IMG/VR virus record: IMGVR_UViG_3300024054_000362
Span: 1-64,000 of that record
Length of the DNA: 64,000 nucleotides
Direction: 5' to 3' (one strand)
Every line of letters begins with the position of its first letter. Position 1 is the stretch's first letter. The translations under genes and the position numbers were made by a program. The notes below the pieces were generated by a model, which did no database searches, was not told the origin of the DNA, and saw only the letters and a program-made list of their open reading frames with translations. This document shows positions 1,381 through 2,562 of this stretch, piece by piece.

Positions 1381-2562
1381 ATGACCAAGAACAAGAAGAA
1401 TAGCCCTACCGCCAATAGCCTCACCAAGCAGGTTCTTTCGGGCGCCACGGGCGCCGAGTCCAACGGCAACGGCAACGGCAACGGCAACGGCAACGGCAAC
1501 GGCAGGAGTGGTGGCGGTAAGAACGGCCGCCACGGTAGGAACGGCGGCAACGGCAAGGGCAAGAAGCGTACGCCGGCCGAGAAGGCGCGACTGCGCGCGC
1601 AGTTGTGTGCCGACTACGTCGACATCCGCATGTTTGGCGCCGTACCTGGCGGCGAGGGCGGTAGCGGAGCCGGCAAGATCCTCGGGCCGATCCACTTCGA
1701 GATCTCCGACTCGATCAACGTGGTCCATCTCTACCAGTCGACGATCACGCGCAATGCCATCGCCAACCACACGATGTCGCAGAGCAAGGACGCGAACCTC
1801 GCTATGGGCGTCAAGCACTGGGTCCAGTACGCACTCTTCTGTACGCGTATCGAGGTGGATGCGTATCCCGGCCGGATCACCGGGCTTACTCATGGCGATG
1901 TCGTACGGTTCTTCGAGAGCTGCATCAACATCTTCGCTCTCGACGCGTCGTCGGCTCGTCCCGAGATGAATGTGAGGAAGTTGATCATCGCGCGACACGC
2001 ATCGCCGCTCGGGAGTTATCCCAGGCCGGAACTCCGCGAGCACGTAATCAACATCCAGCAGCTGGTCCCGCATCCCCGGTCGTACGCGGATTTCAACGTC
2101 GTGATCAACACGACGCCGCCTGCCCCGACGATCGAGCTGTTCGAGGTCGAGCCGATGACGTTCGTCAACAGCAATCTCACGATGGCAGGGATTCTGAATT
2201 CGACGAGACAGGCGCCGATCCCGGACGATGCTCAGATCGACCACAAGTACACTGCGTGGCTGATCTGGGAGGCCGTCAAGTCGAACCCCAATGGCGACCC
2301 CGACAACGCCAACGCGCCGCGCATGAACAGTGTCACGGGGCAGTGCATCGTCATGGACGTCTGCCTCAAGCGCAAGGTTCGCAACTGGTTCACCAAGGCG
2401 CTGGGTTGTGACATCTTCGTCGCCGAGGAGGCCGTTCTGGAGGCTCAGGTCGAACGGTCCGCCGCGAGGCTCGGGCTGGCGCCGGAGGAGCCTGATCCGA
2501 GCGAGGACGTCGATATGGACGAGAGCGACTTGGATGCGGAGGCGTCGAGCGACGACGCCTAG
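1381..2562 (+). CDS. cas7: CRISPR type I-C backbone Cas7/Csd2, circularly permuted
   Basis: Csd2 motifs DIRMFGAV, GPIHF, TITR, MGVKHWVQYALF, SSARPEM and HASPLG come first. The normally N-terminal block SNPNGDPD..PR..MDVCLKRKVRNW sits at the C-terminus. Confidence 0.9.
   Translation: MTKNKKNSPTANSLTKQVLSGATGAESNGNGNGNGNGNGNGRSGGGKNGRHGRNGGNGKGKKRTPAEKARLRAQLCADYVDIRMFGAVPGGEGGSGAGKILGPIHFEISDSINVVHLYQSTITRNAIANHTMSQSKDANLAMGVKHWVQYALFCTRIEVDAYPGRITGLTHGDVVRFFESCINIFALDASSARPEMNVRKLIIARHASPLGSYPRPELREHVINIQQLVPHPRSYADFNVVINTTPPAPTIELFEVEPMTFVNSNLTMAGILNSTRQAPIPDDAQIDHKYTAWLIWEAVKSNPNGDPDNANAPRMNSVTGQCIVMDVCLKRKVRNWFTKALGCDIFVAEEAVLEAQVERSAARLGLAPEEPDPSEDVDMDESDLDAEASSDDA

Follow-up and report, generated by a model that had tools for sequence, protein, structure and literature searches.

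The open reading frame (ORF) at 1381..2562 on the plus strand of the window, a stretch of 64,000 nucleotides that spans positions 1 to 64,000 of the IMG/VR virus record IMGVR_UViG_3300024054_000362, encodes a natural, conserved and selected circular permutant of Cas7, the Csd2 protein of type I-C CRISPR systems. The part of the chain that is C-terminal in canonical Cas7c comes first in this protein (old-C block), and the part that is N-terminal in canonical Cas7c comes second (old-N block). Very probably it serves as the Cascade backbone in a type I-C module that a phage carries for interference, with no genes for adaptation.

The two halves of Cas7c are joined in swapped order

The ORF is a single unbroken frame of 393 codons and a stop. 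Its GC content at third codon positions is 0.84, as in real genes of a sequence with 60% GC, and a purine-rich stretch lies immediately 5' of its ATG. The PF05107 (Cas_Cas7) profile matched the protein with an E-value of 2.5e-53 (181.7 bits; cut-off 33.2) in two stretches, and the NCBIfam profiles cas_Csd2 and cas_CT1132 also matched it in two stretches. TIGR01595 scored 149.6 bits, above its cut-off of 125.8, and the best stretch of TIGR02590 (cas_Csh2) aligned query residues 294-339 with profile positions 6-51. When PDB chains were searched with phmmer, query residues 286-358 aligned with residues 2-77 of N. lactamica (Nla) Cas7c (8g9s_B; independent E-value 4e-11) and residues 57-242 aligned with 84-267 of the same chain (4e-22). 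D. vulgaris Cas7c (7kha_B) gave the same pattern, with query residues 286-371 aligned to 4-93 and 68-248 to 102-283. Each swapped stretch was significant independently (4e-11 to 4e-22), each block is present in one copy, and no hidden Markov model (HMM) gave a single collinear match. These results agree with an earlier note on this DNA, which had proposed from the letters alone that the halves of Csd2 are in swapped order. All the blocks that it named were found, the IDHKYTAW block starting at residue 286 (nt 2236). The parts of the gene are as follows.

1381..2562, plus strand: circularly permuted cas7 (type I-C, Csd2 family)
1381..1566, plus strand: new N-terminal tail, residues 1-62; basic, rich in Gly and Asn, and predicted to be disordered
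1567..2148, plus strand: old-C block, residues 63-256, corresponding to canonical residues ~84-283 (8g9s_B and 7kha_B alignments; Foldseek)
2149..2235, plus strand: linker from the old C-terminus to the old N-terminus, residues 257-285 (alignment, junction listing and DNA)
2236..2466, plus strand: old-N block, residues 286-362, corresponding to canonical residues ~2-85 (PDB-chain alignments)
2467..2559, plus strand: new C-terminal acidic tail, residues 363-393 (charge, predicted local distance difference test (pLDDT) score and family consensus)

The old-C block contains the DIRxFG helix, GPIHF, ITR, the thumb hairpin (residues ~123-143), MGVKH, the SSARPEM strand and the last β-strand. The old-N block contains β1, the NPNGDPD loop, the DVCLKRKVRN helix, the 'IFV' strand and the helix after it. 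The motifs NPNGDPD, CLKRKxRN, DIRxFG, GP(V/I)Q, ITR, MGxK and SxAR are kept, as are the thumb and the motifs that contact the CRISPR RNA (crRNA). Over 88 aligned permuted and canonical rows, D81, R83, F85, G86, G98, G102, T123, G143, K145, Y150, D173, H206, G211 and L218 are invariant; inside the permuted family, the same holds for NPNGDPD and CLKRK. The new termini are flanked by the DIRxFG helix on one side and, on the other, by the helix next after the 'IFV' strand; this is the variable region to which the earlier note had assigned them. Two sizes had to be adjusted. The linker does join the old termini, and its length, given before as ~30 aa, is about 28-35 aa here, ~25 aa in the family and ~6 aa in P0185, a divergent permuted protein; the low-complexity tails, basic at the N-terminus and acidic at the C-terminus, were found as described and measure about 60 aa and about 30 aa, respectively.

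Independent assemblies and diverged homologs share the layout

Eleven contigs encode the identical 393-aa protein; they come from at least 5 independent assemblies, for which different assemblers were used. Among the records with the identical Cas7 are ENA ERZ27250211 (221,568 bp, with the gene mid-contig at ~181 kb) and JGI 3300023208, 3300044996 and 3300056725 (221,489 bp). Assembly 3300044996 and the window are 99.96% identical over 9 kb that include cas7 and the CRISPR array. Near-equal records of ~221.5 kb (221,422 bp for the record that holds the window, 221,489 and 221,568 bp) have different break points, which fits a complete circular or terminally redundant phage genome of ~221.5 kb. 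The independent assemblies that carry the gene mid-contig speak against a misassembly at the junction, which the earlier note had named as a finding that would refute its reading.

Eight homologs (P0001-P0008; 351-370 aa) showed 42-48% identity to the window protein at 77-84% query coverage, while canonical Csd2 proteins cover merely ~45-50% of the query. The nine core sequences can be aligned collinearly over their whole length, and the alignment takes in the N-terminal (GN)n tract as well as the linker and the acidic tail. To classify block order, one HMM was built for the old-C part (query 66-250) and another for the old-N part (286-352). The old-C block preceded the old-N block in 10 distinct proteins: the window protein, in which the layout had first been noticed, and nine further homologs. 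Their carriers are the ~221-kb phage and a few related elements that are phage-like. The other 319 Cas7c homologs (158 + 161; 259 in a protein-only re-test) had the canonical order; this set includes 46 other Cas7c from viral contigs, the 80 best species-representative genome loci and the 80 best JGI metagenome loci. The permuted order was absent from the 161 best-scoring cellular-genome and JGI metagenome loci, all of which were canonical, and INPHARED phages gave two partial canonical matches only. An exhaustive profile search covered 1.84 billion representatives and gave 3,337 matches; among the best 150, the only full-length single-stretch matches were P0005, a representative of the core clade, and P0185, the divergent second permuted protein (325 aa).

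No duplicated block was present in the classified proteins apart from P0121, a 488-aa canonical Cas7c of metagenomic origin with an exact C-block repeat of ~190 residues. P0121, which matched in three stretches in the exhaustive search, was considered as a duplication intermediate and rejected, its order being N-C-C and not the expected C-N-C. It is probably an assembly artefact, or less probably a recent partial tandem duplication.

Purifying selection acts on all parts of the gene

The ratio of nonsynonymous to synonymous substitution rates (dN/dS) was calculated by the Nei-Gojobori method on close pairs (P0001, P0005, P0007). The values were as follows.

Overall: 0.11-0.19
Old-N block: 0.02-0.08
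Old-C block: 0.11-0.16
Linker: 0.22-0.55
N-tail: 0.19-0.62
C-tail: 0.03-0.23

The reading frames are intact in all 10 permuted proteins. Purifying selection maintains all parts of the permuted cas7.

The permuted chain is predicted to fold as a Cas7c

An AlphaFold2 (AF2) model made from the nine permuted sequences alone had a pLDDT of 62 and a predicted template modelling score (pTM) of 0.63. For folding, an alignment of full canonical proteins with the query was rejected; in it MAFFT had matched the canonical NPNGDPD segment with the query's (NG)n tract. We therefore used a 149-row alignment, into which the canonical homologs were entered as separate old-C and old-N pieces so that the topology was left undistorted. 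The resulting model had a pLDDT of 81.8 and a pTM of 0.79, with both blocks in one domain. It is ordered from residue ~62 to ~365, with pLDDT mostly 86-98 in the old-C block and 92-97 in the old-N block. The linker scored 79-89 and contains short helices at 260-263 and 268-272. The pLDDT was below 50 at residues 1-51 of the basic N-tail, and in the C-tail it was 70 for residues 371-380 and 59 for 381-390, staying below 60 after residue 380.

The top Foldseek matches in the PDB were type I-C Cas7 chains (7kha_B, 9jhb_C and 8g9s; probability 1.00), with 28-31% identity in the aligned block and a root mean square deviation (rmsd) of 2.0-3.9 Å over ~194-201 columns (7kha_B, E-value 3.9e-9; 9jhb_C, 3.0 Å over 200 columns; 8g9s_F, 2.0 Å over 194 columns). 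A fold search of BFVD gave no meaningful match. The confident single-domain model and its best structural matches suggest that the protein is permuted yet folded, as the earlier note had supposed. The thumb of Nla Cas7 lies at ~149-163 (10.1101/2023.08.05.552134) and maps to query residues ~123-140, where it is intact. The C-terminus of Nla Cas7 tolerates a His6 tag and a p65 fusion (bioRxiv 10.1101/2023.08.05.552134). Both findings agree with a linker being tolerated between the old termini.

The new termini are two halves of a charged loop

The loop between the two blocks is hypervariable in canonical homologs: measured outside the block envelopes, its median length is 24 residues, and some homologs have as many as 117-176. 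In the nearest canonical relatives in the tree, the metagenomic proteins P0213, P0237 and P0260 and also P0122 and P0123, this loop consists of an acidic run followed by a basic Gly/Asn/Lys run, for example '...EAPPEESEDE...KKKANGNGKK...' and '...NEDPDESVKAKAGKNGKGKNGKGKGK...'. These relatives share 'NGNGKK'- and 'GKNGKGKNGKGKGK'-type runs and an 'AY..G(L/M).AP' lead-in with the permuted proteins. They differ from them in having the canonical order, with the acidic and basic runs contiguous in one internal loop. In the permuted protein the N-tail has a net charge of +11 to +12 and a G+N+S fraction of 0.53, and the C-tail, with the preceding helix included, has a net charge of about -15. We compared the loops using a dipole score, defined as the sum of two terms, the net negative charge in the loop's first part and the net positive charge in its remainder.

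P0237, P0213 and P0260: 24, 23 and 14
Canonical proteins (n = 258), median: 5
Permuted proteins, scored with the C-tail placed before the N-tail: 6-27 (window protein, 27)

The C-terminal consensus of the family, 'AYDxLGLHAPPP...DD', matches the 'AYSAVGMEAPPEESEDE' loop of canonical P0122. The charge pattern and this match identify the tails as the halves of a single disordered loop in the ancestor. The (NG)n tract of the N-tail is encoded by a perfect (CAACGG) x7.3 repeat at 1461-1504 (Tandem Repeats Finder). This hexanucleotide repeat is in frame, so slippage would vary the length of the tail; the length of the tract varies among homologs.

Read from its start, the chain begins in the middle of a canonical Cas7c, in the basic second half of a long surface loop. 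It then reaches the canonical C-terminus, crosses the short linker with an apparent ancestral initiator methionine, continues through the canonical β1/NPNGDPD/CLKRK segment and stops in the acidic first half of the same loop. The linker methionine, Met268 (ATG at 2182-2184), is conserved in 8 of the 9 core members, P0003 being without it. It lies ~12 residues before 'NRW(D)', the counterpart of the canonical N-terminus, at a spacing typical of canonical initiators. This position is suggestive of a relic of the ancestral initiator, in the core clade only, and it fits the classical duplication-fusion-loss route. By that route, which we infer for the phage lineages, a tandem duplication of cas7 would have been followed by in-frame fusion across a short intergenic spacer and then by loss of the outer half-copies, with a new start and a new stop arising inside the disordered acidic/basic loop.

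The permutation likely arose twice

In a tree of the concatenated Cas7 blocks (IQ-TREE), the nine core proteins form a clade (100/99) and P0185 is sister to canonical P0260 (100/99), so that the permuted state needs two changes on this tree. The approximately unbiased (AU) test on the Cas7 blocks did not reject a single permuted clade (p = 0.245). P0185 and P0260 are 48-49% identical over two swapped stretches (38-229 aligned to 147-341 and 236-317 to 37-118), with a bridge of ~6 aa. The Cas8c proteins of their loci are 46% identical, and in BLASTP neither these nor the core-clade Cas8c proteins were among the other's top 15 matches. In the Cas8c tree, the P0185/P0260 pair was supported at 100 and the group of six core loci at 99. 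Cas8c was also the only marker whose AU test rejected a grouping of all loci with permuted Cas7 (p = 0.001). Together, these results suggest that two independent permutation events are likely. P0185 (locus L058) and P0260 (locus L225) come from adjacent Logan runs, SRR29093012 and SRR29093020, and both are singletons.

The permuted cas7 belongs to an interference operon of a huge phage

Two further features of the locus lie in the window.

1..1296, plus strand: 3' part of cas8c/csd1; frame 1 open from base 1, 431 codons and a stop, the gene being cut by the start of the window and contig
2742..6215, plus strand: CRISPR array co-oriented with the cas genes; 46 repeats, each 36 nt long, and spacers mostly of 36-38 nt

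The operon order is cas3, cas5c, cas8c, permuted cas7 and then the 46-repeat array. The earlier note had placed cas8 and cas5 upstream. Both are present, with the qualification that cas8c is truncated in the window; its remainder, cas5c and cas3 were seen in loci L006 and L059, which are from the same phage and show the full upstream genes. In these loci Cas3 has 701-717 aa and an HD domain (TIGR01596, 7e-12), and its residues 170-494 align with the helicase region of type I-C Cas3 (8g9u_P, 5e-12; 8zns_A, 8e-15). Cas5c matched TIGR01876 (3e-32), and the full-length Cas8c of 670 aa matched PF09709 (1e-58). The window part of Cas8c matched PF09709 (1.6e-26, profile 258-553) and TIGR01863 (2.9e-23, profile 271-575). 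The same gene order was found beside P0001, P0002, P0005, P0007 and P0008. Operon context was available for L006, L059, L001, L003, L053, L054, L055 and, in part, L058: cas3, cas5c and cas8c are intact and syntenic in 5 of the 6 other loci, and in L058 only cas8c and cas7 were confirmed, P0185 lying directly after cas8c on a contig with a terminase.

A strongly acidic Cas8c tail is present in all loci with permuted Cas7 (window 1183-1296; the last ~30 codons of the gene in L001, L003, L053, L054, L055 and L058). The tail of the window's Cas8c comes after an (AAQ)n tract that derives from a 9-nt tandem repeat. The presumed Cas11c would therefore share this tail.

The array has 38 distinct 36-mers among its 46 repeats, with a conserved 3' handle of type I-C-like sequence, GGATAGAAAC, and heterogeneous hairpin-forming stems. 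A hairpin of at least 6 bp with a free handle is formed by 36 of the 46, as expected for type I-C repeats processed by Cas5c; Rfam had no family for the repeats. The repeats of the relatives end in GGATTGAAAC. Spacer lengths in the window array span 12 to 119 nt, and in two relatives' arrays (L003, 11318-15277; L054, 11361-15993) the GGATTGAAAC-ending repeats are scattered with very irregular spacing. Three spacers searched against IMG/VR matched only their own arrays, and no self-target was found in the 64-kb window at up to 6 mismatches. No cas1, cas2 or cas4 was found in the window, in 10 kb upstream or in the relatives' flanks (tblastn; 1,554 ORFs from downstream of canonical cas7), a search that left out the remaining ~150 kb of the genome.

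Many tRNA genes are typical of huge phages. The window carries 13 (28645-28822, 33182-33957, 56295-56371 and 59285-59678), including five consecutive tRNA-Leu genes with different anticodons, and it also carries a GH25/peptidoglycan-binding endolysin; its ORFs are mostly orphans. An N6/N4 DNA methylase is encoded at 21798-23117 (plus strand) in fusion with a ParB-like N-terminal domain, adjoined by an FkbM-type methyltransferase at 20126-21064 (minus strand) and a glycosyltransferase-like ORF of 683 aa at 18111-20162. These genes may have a role in DNA or surface modification. A 940-aa Pro/Gln-rich ORF at 34314-37136 (minus strand; GC 0.66, strong AT skew) has a long charged coiled-coil-like middle and no Pfam or PHROG match.

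Function of the permuted Cas7

The loop that was cut is hypervariable and tolerates insertions, and the old termini are exposed and lie next to each other. We infer from this layout that the permuted Cas7 would polymerise along the crRNA like canonical Cas7c and form a working backbone.

Several observations weigh against this account of the protein and of its origin. The type I-C-specific profile TIGR02589 scored 176.7 bits in two stretches, marginally below its cut-off of 182.25; with a collinear profile, blocks in swapped order cannot contribute to one joint alignment score. Foldseek, which aligns in sequence order, superposed the old-C block only (~200 of ~286 target residues), and the template modelling (TM) score by target was 0.57-0.61, since such an aligner reaches no further on a circular permutant. 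The placement of the old-N block in three dimensions comes from the AF2 model alone, and the cross-block signal in the 149-row alignment consists of nine permuted sequences and the priors of the network. As to origin, a search for a relic Shine-Dalgarno motif or ribosome-binding site upstream of the linker methionine gave nothing convincing, in P0185 the linker methionine aligns with an isoleucine of P0260, and a C-N-C duplication intermediate was not found among the classified proteins. Finally, no spacer target was found, so the activity of the system is unproven.

A different role would be that of a decoy or poison subunit acting against the type I-C Cascade of the host, or of a crRNA-binding regulator without interference. 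This Cas7 is phage-encoded, and its permutation could alter assembly. Many acidic anti-CRISPRs have DNA-mimic features. The charged disordered tails and the acidic tail of Cas8c resemble such features; acidic type I-C anti-CRISPRs are discussed in 10.1101/2023.08.05.552134. However, the gene sits in a complete and conserved interference operon with its own cas3, cas5c, cas8c and array, and its thumb and crRNA-contact motifs are conserved. The acidic/basic loop is already present in canonical relatives, so the tails are no novelty of the permuted form. A repurposed Cas7 is therefore unlikely.

An internal start at Met268 could give a separate fragment of the old N-terminal part and so a Cas7 split into two polypeptides. 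The conservation of this methionine in most core members is in line with such a start, and internal translation has a precedent in type I-C systems, where Cas11c is made from within cas8c (PMC7684278). Against it, all 10 genes read through from one block to the other without a stop codon, the methionine has no Shine-Dalgarno-like motif in front of it, and P0003 lacks this residue altogether. The linker is moreover constrained, as its dN/dS shows, and is modelled as packed. We consider two polypeptides somewhat less probable than a repurposed subunit.

It is more improbable still that the gene is a decaying remnant of a duplicated cas7 in a degenerating CRISPR locus. The repeats are unusually heterogeneous and irregularly spaced, and neither a spacer target nor adaptation genes were found. 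Decay is nevertheless at odds with the low dN/dS and the intact frames of all 10 proteins, with the retention of all invariant Cas7c motifs, with the intact and syntenic cas3, cas5c and cas8c of the other loci (cas8c only in L058) and with the hairpin and conserved handle kept in most repeats.

An assembly artefact, in which two tandem copies of cas7 were chimerically joined or collapsed and so mimic a permutation, has a negligible probability and is effectively refuted for the core clade: the sequence is of metagenomic origin, the repeat of P0121 looks assembler-made and P0185 is known from a singleton contig, but the window protein recurs identically across independent assemblies with different break points, eight diverged homologs from other samples share its junction, its linker and both tails, and P0008 occurs on 5 contigs, from at least three Logan runs.

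Relation to known systems and implications

The permuted protein resembles canonical type I-C Cas7 (Csd2; 7KHA chain B and 8G9S chain B) in its signature motifs, in its predicted fold, which matches these chains best, in its place in the operon after cas5c and cas8c and in the hairpin repeat with a ...GAAAC 3' handle. It differs in that the chain runs through the old residues ~84-283 first and ~2-85 second, joined by a linker of 6-35 aa, and in that its termini lie in a variable loop as a basic Gly/Asn tail and an acidic tail. Huge-phage variants of type I-C that lack Cas1/Cas2 are already known (Al-Shayeb et al. 2020, PMC7162821). They share with the present system a phage genome of >200 kb, Cas5d-type processing without Cas6, an array beside the cas genes and the lack of any adaptation genes found. 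They are described as carrying a helicase instead of Cas3, in contrast to the HD-plus-helicase Cas3 here, and the main text of that study mentions neither Cas7 nor permutation. Circular permutation in a Cas protein has a parallel in the permuted HD domain of type III Cas10 (PMC3150331, PMC10212523), which is a different protein and fold, has its catalytic motifs affected by the permutation and is not a backbone subunit. A search of the full-text literature, with subscription journals largely outside its reach, found no permuted Cas7 and only this Cas10 HD domain and engineered cpCas9-type work. A type I-C module without adaptation genes on a huge phage is thus not new, but the permuted Cas7 is, within the searchable literature, undescribed, in keeping with the earlier note.

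The permutation may have arisen at least twice independently at the same acidic/basic loop of phage-borne type I-C systems and be adaptive rather than neutral; we hold this only tentatively, as one possibility that is on balance doubtful. If it were true, the free charged termini could insulate the phage Cascade from co-assembly with the host Cas7c or from anti-CRISPRs directed at Cas7, two ideas that the earlier note had also raised. Alternatively, they could provide charge contacts between subunits, or modulate the binding of DNA as tails that mimic it.

In all class 1 CRISPR effectors repeated Cas7 subunits make up the backbone, and the topology of the Cas7 chain has been regarded as invariable. 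The permuted family suggests that the Cas7 fold and filament tolerate re-threading at a defined loop. The surface site at which the free termini emerge is a possible fusion point on type I-C Cascade editors and activators, besides the C-terminus already in use. The matched P0185/P0260 pair suits tests of topology against assembly, of cross-assembly between phage and host and of sensitivity to anti-CRISPRs. Since collinear profile cut-offs such as that of TIGR02589 and sequential structure aligners under-score permutants, more permuted Cas proteins may hide in metagenomes.

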